A stretch of 64,000 nucleotides of DNA from assembly GCA_020891255.1 (NCBI GenBank), contig BQFW01000004.1:2790001-2854000 (forward strand), given 5' to 3'. Made by a program: the position numbers and the translations under genes. Every line of letters starts with the position of its first letter. The stretch's first letter is position 1. This document shows, in pieces, positions 54,832-62,435 of this stretch. The DNA is from Entomortierella parvispora E1425 (Eukaryota; Fungi; Mortierellomycota). The notes beneath the pieces were generated by a model that worked only from the letters and a program-made list of their open reading frames with translations, did not search any database and was not told the origin of the DNA.

Positions 54832-57099
54832 TACGTGAATATGAGAGGAGGAAGTGAAGAAGAAGAGTGGGTTGTTCTGATCTGGAGAGGGAGGCGATTG
54901 AGCAGGGACGAGATCAAGAAGAGTGAATCAGGCCACTGAAGAGGGGGGAGATGGAGGGAGGGATGGAGGGGAGAGTGGGGAGAGGTGAAGAAAGAGTGAA
55001 GAGAAGAGAAGAAGAGAGGAAGAAGAAGAAGAGGGCGGTTCGGAGCGAGCGACCTTTATAGAGTCCGAGACGGCGACGGGAGGATGACATCGATCCATGC
55101 AAGAAGGAGTGTCGTGTGTTTGTGTGTATGTCTGTATGGTCGCGGGAAGGAGAGGGCGACACTCAGACACACACAGTGGAGCACGGCCATTCAATCGCCG
55201 TAAACAAACAGTGACATATGAAATATGTACGGCAGTATCATTCAGAGCATACCCCACTTCGGGCGTTCCTTTTCCGGACAGGCTGCCTCTGGAGGCGAGG
55301 CGAGGCGAGAGCTGCTGCTGCTGCAGCACGATTAAGAGTAGCAGCGCTCTGATTGACCGATGCAATCGTCGCTCTCCCCCTCGACGATCAACACAAAGAG
55401 AACATCTCCGAGCGACAAACCTCAGACAGAACCGAACGACGGAGTTTCGTATGAAGCAAACTCAAACTCAAGATTTTTGCATGGCCCGTCAACATTTTTT
55501 CATGGCCCGTCACGTGATGCATTCTCGGCGCTCTCGCTCCTTTTGCAAACTGGCGCTTGCGTGCGTATGTGTGTTTGTGTTTGGTTTTGTGTTTGTTGGG
55601 AACGATAACCGCAATGTAGAAGGATCAACCACTCTGCACTGTCCAAGAGGGGAAACAGCCCGAATGCGGGGAAGCGATACGCTCAAGGGTAATCCCCATC
55701 AGGAAACATTGCGTGTTCATCTGGTCTCGAAAGGGGCCGCGCGATGAATGCACAAAGGAATCTGTCCCTGATCAGACTTGGTCTGCGGGGGTTGTATTCA
55801 CTCTGGAATTGAAACCCGCTCCACACCGCCTGTCCACTTTATCCAGGCCCTCTTCAGTCCTCTCCACTTGATCTTCCAGGCTGCGCTGCGGCATGTCCTT
55901 CCTACCCAAATCGCTTCTGGCGTGGTGTTCCTCCTTGGTAGGAGCAAAGAGTGCATTCATTGCACAAAACCCTGTCAATTGGATCTTGGAAACTCGCGCT
56001 GCAGATAGCACTGCAATCGCTTACAATCTTCATGTCTCTGTCCTGTCCCCCCTAGGATAGAGTTTTCCGAATCTCCGAAACTTTGCCCTGGCTTGCAAAC
56101 TTCCGCCCCTGGATCAGCACGTTTTTTTTCCATTGATGTTTTTGTTACTTCATTTCGCACCTGTACACCTGTTGCTGTATAAATACGACGTTTTCGGGGC
56201 TCTCCAAGCCATTCCGCGCACGGCTGTCGTCCAAAGCTGCCTGAGATTGAACAGGTTGAGGCTTGTAGCTCTTTGAAGTCTGTGAATCTCTGTGAGGTCC
56301 ATTCTTCAGTGTTGCACAGCACTTACCAGCCTCCGGCTACGGAGCATCCACGTAGAATTCCCTCAATCCTCATCCCGCACTAGGAGCAAAAACAATGCAT
56401 CACATGTCCGAAGGGCTTGGCTGAGCCCCTCCAACACAGTCGTAACAGAGGACATCAAGGCGCCACCCCTTGCAACATAAAGTAGAGTGTCCTCTGACCT
56501 GGGCATTCCAAAGGAACAATCACCTCCAAAGCACCCGGTCTCCCTCTGGATGAAAGTCAAGTGAAAAGAGGAGGAGGAATTCGTGAAGTGGTCCTCAGGT
56601 AACACACTGCTGGCTCGAGGCTGTTGCCGTGGAAAAAAGACCATCTTTTTTGGAACATTCACTAGGAAACGCAACAAAAAAAGTTGGAGCCTCTCTACTT
56701 TAGTCCTGACCCCATGGCTTCTTTGCAACGCAGAGGTGAACGACTCGATGTGTATCCATATAGAGGTTACGGGGTTCTATTGAGATAAAGATGAAATGAA
56801 AAATGATGTTGAAGTGGTCAATCGCATTGTTCTTTCTTCTCCATGGGTGAGCGGGGACCATCAGCTGCCCGTACCTGGCAATGGTCACTGTCCAACACGG
56901 GGCAGTAGCCTTTTTTTTTTGCCCATGGTAGATCATGTGACCGTTTGTGGAGATGGAGTTTGAGCAGCAAAGGGACCTTAACGCTCTTTACCTCTTTCTC
57001 TCCGACTTTCTCTTCTTTCTTTCAACAATCGTTCCTCCCCTTGTTCCTGTAACCGTTTCTCACTCCTTGTCTGTGCAACCACAAACAGAAAGAAAAATA

Positions 57100-59139
57100 A
57101 TGTCCGGTGGCTTCATATCTGTTCCCTCGATCGGGGCTGTCCTGGTTCCATTGTTCGTCCTCGTCAGCGCTCTTTTTGGCCCAGGACTACTCAATGTTCC
57201 CTGCACTCCCTATCTCATCGTTGCGTTGAGTCTTGGGTATTTGGAGCGCCTTGGCCCCTGGTCTCGCTCTGTCATCTTCCCTGGTCTTTATCTACTGGCC
57301 TGTCTGACTGTCGGCACAGGTCTCGCGTACAGTGGCATGCTCCAGTCTGACGTCTGGGACAATTCCTTGATGGGGACGCCATTCTTGATCGGCCTTGGAG
57401 TTTCGATCATCAACTTAATCCCGTTATGGATCCATTTGGCCTGGCATCGTCGGTTCTTGCCCCAGGAGCGGTTCCAAAACGGAGGCCTGGCTCTCCTGGG
57501 AACCTTAGTTGCGCCTGCCGTCTGGGTGGCGCTGTTCACCATTATCTACGCGGTTAGTCCCATTGGATCTTATGGGTCGATTGCGTACACACAATTTCAG
57601 ATTGAACCTCTGGTGCAATGGGCTTCCGTGGCTGGCATCTCAGGAATCGAGTTCTATGTGGTGAGTCTTCGAGTTTTGTTTCGGCCCGTTTTTGAGAATA
57701 ATTATTGTTTGTCATGTAACAGCCGCTGGGCTCAGACTCGACAGCACGATGTTGACCAAGAAGGGCTTTCTTTTGACGCTTTTTTTCCAAATGTTTGCTT
57801 CTATGTTTACCATATTAGGTGTGGGCATCGGTCATCCTCCACAGGACCTGGAAGAACTATGTCCGCCTTGACTCCAGGGACAGCGATACACAAAATTGGG
57901 GCAACATCGGGCAAGGACGAGGAGACGGTTTGGACACCCGACGTTGTCATGGGCGCTTTAGGCTCTTTCGCCGAATTCTTTTTGCACCCGCGCCTACTTT
58001 TGTCATCGTCACCTTTGTGATCTTCCTGTATGGCTCGATGCGATTTTGGAACGGCAACGGGACTTTTTTCATGAAACCATTGAGCAGTACCATGCTCCCT
58101 ACCGTCCGCGCCAGCTGTGTGATTGGCTCCTCGGACTCTAACAATATGTCGGGGTATTTGAACCAAACGGTCGAATACGCGAAGCAGGGATCCGAAATTG
58201 TCATTTGGAGCGAAACCGCCGTCTTGATGAACAACTCTCAAATGGCTGACCAGTTTTTGAACGTCGCCAAGAACATCTCGACTACGTATGGCATTTACCT
58301 GGGTGTGACCTATTCTCAGTTTTTGGATGAGCAATTGGTCCAGAGCAAGAACATGTTCACATTGGTGGACCCCCAGGGCGAAATCGCGTTCATGTACCAG
58401 AAGGCACACCCGGTGACTATGGTGGAGACGACAGTAACCGCTGGGCCCAATGTCTTGCCGGTAGCAGATTCGGACAAGTTTGGACGACTGGGAGGTTCGA
58501 TTTGTTTCGACATGGATTTCCAGAATTTTATTGCACAAGCCGGGAAAAAGAAGGTTGATTTGATGCTACAGCCGAGCTGGACCTGGGGTAAGAGAATGAC
58601 TTGACCAAAGTTGCGAACCATGTGGACCATATCCAGCAAATGACGTTTCTGACGAGTGTCTCAAACCCTTCCCGTCGATCCTTTGTCACATAGGCTCTAT
58701 CGGGCGCCTGGAGGCTTCCATTCAATCTTTCAGAGCTGTCGAGCAAGGGTTCTCGTTGTTCCGTTGTGGCTCATGGGCACCTTCGACTGCCTGGGATGCT
58801 TACCATCAGCTCTTTGGTTACACCTACAATCTTGGTTCCGGCTCTTTCCACGCAGACATTCCCCTGCGCAAGCATGTCTCTACCATCTATACTGCTGTCG
58901 GCAGCTTGTGGTCATATATCTGCTGTGTTTACGCCATTGCCTCCTTGGTCTTGGTGCTGATCCCTCAACGGTTCTTGGACCAGGGAATGGCGCGACTTGG
59001 GGGTCACCGACTCTTTTTTAAAGTTGGATCGAATGATACCAGCATCGATGGTTCGAACGCGTCCGAGAACAATAACCAGCTTGCTTCTGTGGACCAGGAG
59101 GGTCTCGCGCATTCTGGAACTGCAGAGGAATCGGTGTAA
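57100..59139 (+). CDS. Apolipoprotein N-acyltransferase (Lnt)-like protein: multi-TM N-terminus + nitrilase-fold domain with E-K-C triad; 3 exons
   Basis: Several hydrophobic helices; PIGSYGSIAYTQ..QWASVAGISGIEF resembles the conserved Lnt GYSQ..P..G segment. Catalytic IVIWSETA, YQKAHPV and ICFDMDF; DLMLQPSWTW|G; RAVEQGFSLFRC. Introns at 57661-57818 and about 58589-58692. Confidence 0.85.
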
Positions 59140-60604
59140 GGAGACAATCTCCCAAAAATAAAGTTGTCTGTCCCAAACGGCCGGCTGAAATAAGTTGTGT
59201 AAATGACACTCCTCAAGTTTTTCTTTCTTTCCTCCCCCTTACATGAAAGATAAAAGAAATGGAGAGGTCCAAAAGTTCCCAAAGACTCTGCAGGGCCAAT
59301 GCACTCAGAGTGGATTGGACGGGTAACGCGACAGGTGGTCGAGAAATATATATGTTTTTTTTTTTTTGAAAGGTGGCGGTAAAATGTAAAAACTCAAGAA
59401 TTGGACTCTAGCAGTGCTCCCCGTTCTCACCCCTCCGGCAAAAGAAGGGTTCGCTCGACCCGAGTGGAATTTGCCAATGACGATTGGAGTGTGGATTATG
59501 GTCGGCGATGTTCCGAACATAGAGATGAAGAGTAGAGAGATGATCTATTATGAGGTCAGAGGATGTTGAAGCTAAAGGCACTGAGTGTCATATTGCACTT
59601 GTCATTAGTACCTTTGACACCCTGACCTAGCCTGACCACTCTTTATGGGATGACCGTGGAAGGATGGTCATGGTTTGGTGGTCAGCCAGCTATTCCATAC
59701 ATCCACATAGATATTAGTGATAATGAAAGGGTTGGTGGGTCATTTTGCGGGACGAGAAAAACATTTCCAGAAGAGTCTTCTACTAGGGCTGTTCCCGGTC
59801 TCTCCCAGCCCTCTCTCCACACGGTATTGAGCGCGTGCGCCTCAATCAGAAGGACACAATAGAAAAAAAAAAGCCAACAAAAAAAGAAAAAAAAAAAATG
59901 CCTCATTTTTGTCCTTGTTGCCCCTGCCTCTCCTTCACGAAGTCCACCACACCAGAACCAGGCGAGGTCTTTGGTCTGCAGTCGTGGTGTTGCGGCAAGG
60001 CAAAGAGGAGGAGCAGGGCAACCAAGGCAGGGCAACCAAGGCAAGGCAAAGGCAAGGAAAGTCAAAGCAGCAGGGCAAACGAAATAGCCGGGCAAGGGAA
60101 GGTAGCACACAGGGCAAGTGAATGGGTTGTGCTGCTATCTGGTTGAATGAGGTGGATCATGGTGTGCTGATAAAAATAATCCAGCAGGCATGGAGCAGGC
60201 AGACAGATAAGACGAGACATTGCTCTCTTCTCTCTATCTCTCCCTCTCTCTCTCTCTCTCTTCTCCAACAACTCGTTTTCTTTTGACCGTTCTTAATCAT
60301 CCTTCCATCCTTCCATCCTTCCACCCACCTCTCTCGTTTCAGACAGGCAAACAGACAGACAGTCATCCTCGTTTCCTAATTGAGCTGTCGCACTGAACAT
60401 TCTCGTCCATTGTCTCATTTGTCAGCCCCGCGTCTCTCTCCGTCTTGGCAATCGACTATTTCTACTCTATCGTTCTCCCATTTCTTCGTTTCTCTCCTTG
60501 TCTCTCGTCGCTCATCACCTCTCTCGTGTACATATTCCCTTCACTCTCCCTTGTAATCTACTCATCTTTTGTACCATACATACCCTCTTTCCACACTTTG
60601 CACA

Positions 60605-62435
60605 ATGGTTACCTTTTCAACTGACTACTGGGCTCCCGCCATGGAAGTCAATGTCCGACGACGAACCGAGAAAACCGGTGGTCTGACCGCAACAGCCGCC
60701 CCCGGTGCTCACCAGCCGCACCATGACGACCACTGGTCCACCCTGCGACAAGTCCCTACCCTCGAATCCTCCTCGACTTCTTCCTCCCACGGCGGTAATG
60801 GCAGTGTCGTCAACTTTCCCTCACCATATCCTTCAGATTCGACTCCAACTCTCAAGAAGACCCTTCTCGGTGGCGCCTCAAAACCAACGCCTCTTACTGT
60901 CCCCACCTCCAAGAAGCAGAACCTCATCCACAAGATCTTTCACCACGAGTCCAAAGGAAGCGCTTCGACTTCTCCTGAGGATGATCCTTATCTGATTGGT
61001 ACCTCCAGTCCACTCGAGAAGAAGAATCTGTTCAACTTTATGATCGGACGAGGCTCAAGCTTTGGCAGCGAGCGAGGAATCGATGCTGCTGCTGGCATGT
61101 CTGGTTCAAAAAAGAACGGCGCCCTTGGAACGAATACTGCCTTGACGATCGCCAACAATGACTGCACCCTGTTGAAGAAGTACGGACTTTGTGATAAGGG
61201 TCATATCGGCCAGGGAGCCACCGCCGTGGTCCGATTGGCACACAAGCTTGCCAGAGATGAGTCCAGCGAAAAGTTGTTTGCCGTCAAAGAGTTCCGGAAA
61301 CGGAATAAGGACGAGACCGAGAAGGAGTACGTCAAGAAGTTGACAAGCGAATTCTGTATCTCGTCCACTCTGCACCACGAAAACATTGTCGAGACGGTGG
61401 ATCTTGTCCAGGATGAACAGCACCACTGGTGTGAAGTTATGGTAAGGTTTGCTTTCATTTGTTGTCATCAGGCACTTTGGGAGGCACACCTGGAATTCCA
61501 GGGAGCCCATCATCATGGGAAGCAGGGTCAATGAGGTCAGGCAAAGGGGCGAGAACGGGCTGACATTCGTTGTTAGACTGACGCACATGTGGCACGGACG
61601 ACTTTAATCAGGAAGGCACCAAATCAAAAAAAAAAAAAAAAAGAAATCCCTCATTTGTTTGGTACTGTGCAACCATGATGATCGGGAAAGAGGACAAACG
61701 TGCGAAGGGGCTATTTTTTGGGCGCAATGAAATGCCTACCGCCTCGTACCCTACTTTTGCATGCATGTGTACTAATCTGCTTATTTTTATCTCTCTTTGT
61801 AGGAGTACTGCTGTGGCGGTGACTTGTACAACACTATCAAGCAGGGCCATATGTCCCGGATAGAGATCGATTGCTGCTTCAAGCAACTGGTCAATGGTGT
61901 CGCGTACTTGCATTCCATGGGCGTTGCCCATCGTGACATCAAGCCCGAGAACCTGCTGCTGGACGGACAGGGTCGCATCAAGATTACAGACTTTGGTGTT
62001 TCGGACGTCTTCCGGATGTGCTGGGAGAAGTCCCCTCATCTCTCCAAGGGTCTCTGCGGCTCTGAGCCCTATATCGCCCCCGAAGAGTTCCTCAGCAAAG
62101 AGTACGATGCCCGTTGTGTAGATGTCTGGGCCTGTGGTATCGTTTACTACTGCATGGTCTACCAGGGTATCCCTTTCCGAGCTGCCATGTCCCAAGATTT
62201 GAACTACAAGCACTTTTTGGAGATGCGCGCCGTCAACAATTACGAGCCATTTGAAAAGTTGCCCCTTGGATGCCGCACACTGATGAAGAAGATCTTGGAC
62301 CCCAACCCAAAGACAAGAATTACTATTGAGCAAATCAAAGAGGATCCTTGGTTCAAGAGCATTGAGACGTGTCTCCATGGCGAGAACCAGGACCCACATC
62401 GCCACCTTGAACCCTCCAATCCCTCAAAGTTCTAA
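60605..62435 (+). CDS. Ser/Thr protein kinase of the fungal HAL/Npr1/Hrk1/Ptk2 family, 2 exons
   Basis: IGQGATAVV, FAVKEF, KKLTSEFCISSTLHHENIVETVDL, WCEVM|EYCCGGDL, HRDIKPEN, DFG, CGSEPYIAPEE, DVWACG. Confidence 0.93.

Follow-up and report, generated by a model that had tools for sequence, protein, structure and literature searches.

The 64,000-nucleotide stretch of the Entomortierella parvispora E1425 genome that was analyzed here (contig BQFW01000004.1, positions 2,790,001 to 2,854,000; referred to as the window) contains a three-exon gene of ~591 codons on the + strand (57100-59139), which encodes a multi-pass membrane protein related to bacterial apolipoprotein N-acyltransferase (Lnt). 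The encoded protein is probably a eukaryotic membrane acyltransferase of the Lnt superfamily, which forms a clade of its own, acts on an acceptor other than a bacterial lipoprotein, and has as its bacterial sister group a paralogue linked to TetR-type regulators. This assignment draws on the observed gene structure, architecture, conserved catalytic residues, topology signals, purifying selection and phylogenetic placement. To our knowledge, Lnt is regarded as an enzyme found only in bacteria and as an antibiotic target. A conserved and selected family with the Lnt fold and an intact triad in fungi, algae and a land plant would therefore point to a second, as yet undefined, job for this fold.

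The exons and introns are listed in Table 1. Both introns display GT-AG borders, and the guanine-plus-cytosine content is 0.525 in the exons, 0.41 in intron 1 and 0.46 in intron 2. As the length of intron 1 is not divisible by three, read-through would shift the frame away from that of exon 2, and only splicing joins the membrane part at the N-terminus to the nitrilase domain in one frame. Because the exons were handled one by one, the annotated orthologue from Mortierella sp. 14UC (KAF9134723, 571 residues, 67% identical, denoted P0002) was used as a proxy for the full-length protein. Exon 1 aligns without gaps to P0002 residues 1-187 (74% identity), exon 2 to residues 188-436 (65%) and exon 3 to residues 438-533 (73%). 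Residue 437 is the counterpart of the Gly whose codon is split by intron 2, and the junctions show no missing or surplus residues. The orthologue gene (locus L084) carries introns at both of the same places. The predicted splicing pattern is thus based on colinearity with the orthologue, on the intron positions common to both genes and on the logic of the reading frame rather than on RNA reads. The intron-containing gene with its multi-pass N-terminus, nitrilase fold and two spliceosomal introns, which had been proposed in a preliminary description of this DNA, is recovered by the exon model, by the sequence profiles and by the fold of the orthologue. As a separate observation, the exon 1 frame remains open through intron 1, which yields a mechanical open reading frame of 357 amino acids (56947-58020, +); a transcript that retains intron 1 would encode the membrane helices and an out-of-frame tail, without the catalytic domain.

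Sequence profiles and the catalytic triad place the protein in the nitrilase superfamily. Exon 2 matches Pfam CN_hydrolase (PF00795) with an E value of 2e-9 and 37.5 bits, above the threshold of 23.2 bits, and P0002 reaches 44.5 bits. For the membrane part, exon 1 matches Pfam LNT_N (PF20154) with an E value of 1.6e-3 and 19.1 bits, which is below the gathering threshold of 27.1 bits; full-length P0002 is barely above this value (28.1 bits), and a precomputed LNT_N match is present on many orthologues. The top NCBIfam model for both exon 1 (E value of 2.9e-4) and exon 2 is TIGR00546 (lnt). The equivalog cut-off of this model (Lnt, EC 2.3.1.269) is 132.9 bits, and all scores fall below it: 20.1 and 32.3 bits for the two exons, 64 for P0002, 82 for the Basidiobolus protein and 90-119 for the bacterial sister group. 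TIGR00546, which covers the membrane part as well as the domain, is nevertheless the best NCBIfam model by far for every full-length member tested. The models of soluble amidases and nitrilases (formamidase, Nit2 and deaminated-glutathione amidase) yield 20-40 bits, far below their cut-offs of 355-500 bits. An exhaustive phmmer search with exon 2 yielded 1053 cluster representatives at E<=1e-3 (362 at E<=1e-10), many of which are 500-600 residues long with the domain at ~210-450. When a profile was constructed from eukaryotic and bacterial relatives, Lnt was detected at an E value of 1e-29 over positions 15-480 (residues 33-516 of Lnt); the best soluble nitrilase was found at 2e-20 over the domain only, and pantetheinases were detected too.

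The structural comparison was performed with an AlphaFold2 model of P0002, which was built on an alignment of 29 sequences and has a predicted local distance difference test (pLDDT) score of 87 and a predicted template-modeling (pTM) score of 0.87. In a Foldseek search of the PDB, the top 24 matches were all Lnt structures, which were aligned over their full length (~560 columns, E value of 7e-16, target TM-score up to 0.75). Superposition of the model and Lnt using VIA-align gave a Z score of 27.9 and a root-mean-square deviation of 3.5 Å over 449 residues (model residues 6-526, Lnt chain residues 1-508). Amidases reach a similar Z score (~27), but only over the ~230 domain residues (~272-515). 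Eight membrane helices are predicted, the hydrophobic segments encoded by the window exons coincide with the helices of the P0002 model, and helix 8 corresponds in the alignments to the C-terminal helix of Lnt. The features that define the Lnt architecture, i.e., a membrane domain of seven helices, a nitrilase domain on the exoplasmic side and one more helix at the C-terminus, are all found in the P0002 model and in the profile. The fungal protein is thus predicted to have the complete Lnt architecture and not to group with the soluble nitrilases.

The distribution of charged residues is consistent with the orientation of Lnt. With the helices taken from the model, 20 Lys and Arg residues are found among 118 predicted cytosolic residues and none among the 35 residues of the short exoplasmic loops. 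In addition, four N-x-S/T sequons are located at the start of or inside the predicted exoplasmic domain (Table 1). Among the Mortierellaceae orthologues, two of these sites are conserved in 23/23 sequences and one in 17/23. We infer from these signals that the sequons are glycosylated and where in the cell the protein resides; the catalytic domain would be lumenal or extracellular with both termini in the cytosol.

At the active site, the motifs WSET, YQKAHP and ICFDMDF noted in the preliminary description are present, and they hold the counterparts of the Glu267, Lys335 and Cys387 triad of E. coli Lnt. These three residues are invariant in 78 sequences (43 from the eukaryote clade and 35 bacterial), and the catalytic triad of the window gene is intact. 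In the profile alignment the family motif PVPGxE (PVxxxE) lies opposite LVPFGE of Lnt, such that the equivalent of Glu343, which in Lnt polarises the Lys (PMC5500888), is kept; it is conserved in at least 90% of the A1 alignment of eukaryotic sequences. Residues found to be essential in E. coli Lnt also include Trp237, Tyr388 and Glu389, in addition to Glu343 (PMC3850990). The Tyr388-Glu389 pair is conservatively replaced by Phe-Asp (Phe in 41/43 and Asp in 43/43 eukaryotic sequences), and the equivalents of Ser411, Trp415, Arg432 and Pro129 are retained.

Table 1. Features of the Lnt-like gene (positions in the window).
Feature	Position	Strand	Description
Exon 1	57100..57660	+	187 codons; translation start, five clear membrane helices, first half of the sixth
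Intron 1	57661..57818	+	158 nucleotides, GTGAGT...TAG, phase 0
Exon 2	57819..58587	+	256 codons and one base of the split Gly codon; remainder of helix 6, charged loop on the cytosolic side, helix 7 (57984-58049), the larger part of the nitrilase-fold domain, catalytic residues, QPSWTW signature
Intron 2	58588..58693	+	106 nucleotides, GTAAGA...TAG, phase 1, within the Gly codon after QPSWTW
Exon 3	58694..59139	+	final third of the nitrilase domain, with the RAVEQG motif, helix 8 (58906-58962), basic cytosolic tail, TAA
Sequons, N-x-S/T (four)	58056..58274	+	Asn codons at 58056, 58161, 58230 and 58272
Catalytic Glu codon	58212..58214	+	WSE/WSET; Glu267 of E. coli Lnt
Catalytic Lys codon	58401..58403	+	YQKAHPV; Lys335 of Lnt
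Second active-site Glu codon	58425..58427	+	TMVET; Glu343 of Lnt
Nucleophile Cys codon	58503..58505	+	ICFD, in ICFDMDF; Cys387 of Lnt
Glu codon at the His425 position of Lnt	58711..58713	+	P0002 residue 443

The gene is not confined to this fungus. Named members of the family are found in essentially all genera of Mortierellaceae, in many Mucorales and in Basidiobolus ranarum, and outside the fungi in Chlamydomonas reinhardtii, C. incerta, Closterium, Selaginella moellendorffii and Paulinella chromatophora. The Paulinella record is a transcript assembly and hence at least that member is expressed. In databases these proteins are labeled "hypothetical", "CN hydrolase" or, automatically, "apolipoprotein N-acyltransferase", i.e., automatic annotation already picks up the family, which constitutes a eukaryotic branch of the Lnt superfamily. 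Where the neighboring genes on the contigs were checked, they are eukaryotic (tubulin, HORMA/PHD, Rieske, ubiquitin-conjugating enzyme, ELP6 and a ciliary dynein assembly factor). The QPSWTW signature had no relative in the 185,579 bacterial and archaeal species genomes of GTDB.

In two trees (FastTree with 175 rows and IQ-TREE LG+C20 with 83 rows), all named eukaryotic sequences, together with metagenomic ones, form one clade with support of 100 in both and a long stem, apart from the clade that holds all named bacterial sequences; E. coli Lnt and remoter Lnt-like proteins lie outside both. In this eukaryotic part of the trees, the Mortierellaceae are placed with Basidiobolus, the Mucorales with one another, Selaginella with Closterium, and Chlamydomonas with other algal sequences. 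A constraint that holds the zygomycetes together, which was named after the tree had been seen, reached a higher likelihood than the unconstrained quick search and was not rejected (approximately unbiased test, p-AU 0.85). No donor lineage, for which the preliminary description had proposed a phylogeny, could be named from these trees.

The position and phase of intron 2 are common to the window, Mortierella sp. 14UC, Basidiobolus ranarum and Dichotomocladium elegans, all four of which have TGGACxTGGG|GTA at the boundary. G|GT is a favoured insertion site where parallel gain could occur, yet inheritance of intron 2 from a common ancestor of these fungi appears to be the simpler reading. The separation from the bacterial clade, the wide range among eukaryotes and the shared intron indicate an old gene that was inherited vertically and lost in many lineages, rather than one acquired recently from a symbiont. 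The link to endohyphal bacteria suggested in the preliminary description is thus not sustained: the family occurs in algae, a lycophyte and Paulinella, forms its own clade and shares an intron among three zygomycete lineages.

With the pattern ICFD[AM]D[FH][PH], taken from alignment A3, relatives were found in 333 species genomes, mainly of Chloroflexota, Actinomycetota, Acidobacteriota and Verrucomicrobiota. In 30/80 of the loci (L003-L082) a gene for a TetR-family regulator (TetR_N and TetR_C_33 domains) is found directly upstream on the same strand, and the same order is seen on a metagenomic contig (L085). This pairing and the TIGR00546 scores below the cut-off indicate an inducible accessory gene rather than a housekeeping lnt. 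The nearest bacterial relatives are thus an accessory Lnt paralogue and not the housekeeping Lnt, judging from sequence and gene order. Lnt paralogues that do not replace Lnt have been described (PMC3850990). Direct descent of the fungal gene from canonical Lnt, which was implied by the preliminary description, is not supported by these data. The bacterial paralogues (e.g., P0122 and P0114) are 25-34% identical to the eukaryotic proteins and share their length and architecture as well as the AYTQ loop and the YxK(A/S)HPV and ICFDxDFP motifs; they differ in having PSxDW in place of QPSWTW, and their genes are intronless. One database protein, P0224, combines LNT_N and TetR domains in one chain, and bacterial Lnt-like proteins in the ESM Atlas are fused to HAD (Verrucomicrobiota) or TatC (Latescibacterota).

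The gene appears to be maintained by selection. Between the window gene and its orthologue the proportions of nonsynonymous and synonymous differences are 0.16 (pN) and 0.77-0.83 (pS), i.e., pN/pS is ~0.2, and pN far below pS indicates purifying selection. A protein kinase gene downstream (60587-62411, +) is syntenic with the kinase gene at 5484-7570 of L084, with a translated identity of up to 85-90%, which confirms that the window belongs to a Mortierellaceae genome.

From the mechanism of Lnt, the following reaction may be outlined. The enzyme would carry its nitrilase-fold site (Cys/Glu/Lys, with the second Glu) on the lumenal or extracellular side, close above the membrane. A membrane glycerophospholipid would donate an acyl chain to the Cys, which gives a thioester and a free lysolipid, as in the ping-pong mechanism of Lnt. 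The chain would then go to a lipid or a membrane-tethered molecule of the exoplasmic leaflet, where the nucleophile that takes it over is most likely an amine. It is very unlikely that this acceptor is the S-diacylglyceryl-cysteine of bacterial lipoproteins, because of the eukaryotic distribution, the separate clade and the finding that the bacterial sister group is not the housekeeping Lnt. A non-lipoprotein acceptor, one of the two options put forward in the preliminary description, is the sensible inference. More tentatively, the family could represent an ancient exoplasmic, phospholipid-dependent N-acyltransferase of eukaryotes other than animals, seed plants and probably ascomycetes, which makes a hitherto unassigned class of N-acylated membrane lipids or an N-terminally acylated secretory protein and is unrelated to the known MBOAT enzymes; the TetR-controlled bacterial sisters would then perform the same chemistry on a non-lipoprotein acceptor. 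This wider proposal is possible, but we hold it with less than even confidence. If the acceptor were identified, a new modification of lipids or proteins in the secretory membranes of eukaryotes could come to light, and the TetR-linked paralogues could be explained as well.

Several observations weigh against assignment as an acyltransferase. The nitrilase domain in isolation is about equally near to soluble amidases and to Lnt: an exon-level single-sequence search of solved structures returned formamidase and Nit2 and no Lnt, and the eukaryote-only profile A1 placed formamidase narrowly above Lnt. Trp237, which Lnt requires for the transfer step, falls in a region without an alignable counterpart in the family. 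The position of His425, an active-site residue of Lnt (PMC5500888), is occupied by Glu in all Mortierellaceae including the window gene (among the 43 eukaryotic sequences, His in 31/43 and Glu in 6/43). Furthermore, the structural model is that of the 67% identical orthologue rather than of the protein encoded in the window, and the literature searched contained no paper that deals with Lnt homologues of eukaryotes or with Lnt paralogues linked to TetR; the one fungal nitrilase paper in which the term appears applies it to an archaeal soluble protein. The undescribed acylation system suggested in the preliminary description would not be restricted to fungi, given the wider eukaryotic family. 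The replacement of His425 by Glu, near the nucleophile, is a change specific to Mortierellaceae; most other eukaryotic and bacterial members keep His.

The strongest competing explanation is a membrane-bound lipid amidase or hydrolase, which would cleave an N-acyl lipid (an N-acyl-phospholipid or a ceramide-like amide) or act as a phospholipase A1 with water as acceptor. Most branches of the nitrilase superfamily are amidases, and the pantetheinases picked up by the broad profile are eukaryotic ecto-amidases of the same fold; these facts, the ambiguous affinity of the isolated domain, the lack of an alignable Trp237 and the Glu at the His425 position all speak for such an activity. Yet the family has kept the membrane domain of Lnt in its entirety as well as the C-terminal helix, which in Lnt form the lipid portal for a two-substrate reaction, and on full-length proteins TIGR00546 outscores every amidase model. 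We consider hydrolysis unlikely, although it has to be taken seriously. A related candidate, i.e., a soluble nitrilase to which helices have been added, was rejected on the basis of the full-length family scans, the broad profile and the whole-length fold; grouping with soluble nitrilases, which the preliminary description had named as an outcome that would speak against it, was suggested by the single exon and by profile A1 and was overturned by the same evidence.

That the protein is a true apolipoprotein N-acyltransferase, which triacylates bacterial-type lipoproteins of endohyphal bacteria or of the fungus itself, is much less likely still, indeed very improbable. The Lnt fold and triad are in place, and Mortierellaceae host endobacteria. 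However, the family is found in algae, a lycophyte and Paulinella and is set apart from all named bacterial sequences, P0002 scores 64 bits against a cut-off of 132.9, and even the bacterial sister group is not the housekeeping Lnt. In addition, the domain would be oriented towards the lumen or the exterior of the fungus and not towards a bacterial periplasm, and bacterial Lnt paralogues have been documented as unable to substitute for Lnt (PMC3850990).

A protein that has lost catalysis and retains the fold as a relic or scaffold, for which the exchange of the active-site His for Glu in Mortierellaceae could be taken as a sign, has a slightly smaller chance than this, as Glu, Lys and Cys are invariant in 78 diverse sequences and pN/pS is ~0.2. 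Bacterial contamination of the assembly or a very recent horizontal transfer, which would fit a family of bacterial type with relatives named automatically as apolipoprotein N-acyltransferase, was rejected, as was recent transfer from an endosymbiont, on account of the two spliceosomal introns, the synteny with another Mortierella genome, the intron common to Basidiobolus and a Mucorales species and the QPSWTW scan of prokaryotic genomes; its probability is close to nil.

In comparison to Lnt of E. coli and P. aeruginosa (PDB 5N6H, 5N6M, 6NWR and 8B0K), the putative eukaryotic acyltransferase has the same eight helices, of which helices 7 and 8 flank the nitrilase domain, the same topology signals, the triad and the Glu343 equivalent, and the same full-length fold. 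The family differs in having ICFD where Lnt has ICYE and PVxxxE where Lnt has LVPFGE, in its low identity to Lnt (16-18%), in a long, charged loop that connects helices 6 and 7 on the cytosolic side, and in the lack of an alignable Trp237. It differs also in its host: eukaryotes are not known to have the Lgt/LspA pathway (e.g., PMC8689077) or to make its lipoprotein substrates. The soluble and secreted amidases (formamidase AmiF, Nit2 and pantetheinase/vanin) share with the family the alpha-beta-beta-alpha domain and the triad, but have no membrane domain and match only residues ~272-515 of the model, and the family remains far below their NCBIfam cut-offs. The AatD-type N-acyltransferases of Enterobacterales, mycobacterial BCG_2279c and Streptomyces Lnt2 were compared by description and not by sequence. 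They provide a precedent for Lnt-fold enzymes that act on acceptors other than classical lipoproteins or that fail to replace Lnt (PMC7478709; bioRxiv 10.1101/2020.09.23.310854; PMC3850990). BCG_2279c has a Ser at the position of the catalytic Cys, which the eukaryotic family keeps.

A number of observations bear on the extent of the family. In Podila epicladia there are two differing copies (P0172 and P0182, 579 and 444 residues, 60% and 59% identical to P0002), which suggests a duplication within Mortierellaceae. A 61-member, mostly basidiomycete cluster of 546-residue proteins in the ESM Atlas has the same overall fold (TM-scores of 0.73/0.76 over 466 residues), but only 15% of its members are recognized as CN_hydrolase. 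The fold may thus extend to Dikarya, where it would be divergent and perhaps without catalytic activity. The sequence search with profile A1 did not reach this cluster. One protein that branches at the base of the eukaryote clade (P0057, 597 residues, with introns; L090 6001-8403, GCA_027972325.1) is encoded next to genes for a ciliary dynein assembly factor and an ataxin-10-like protein, i.e., in a eukaryotic genome, and the family thus reaches at least one more protist lineage.

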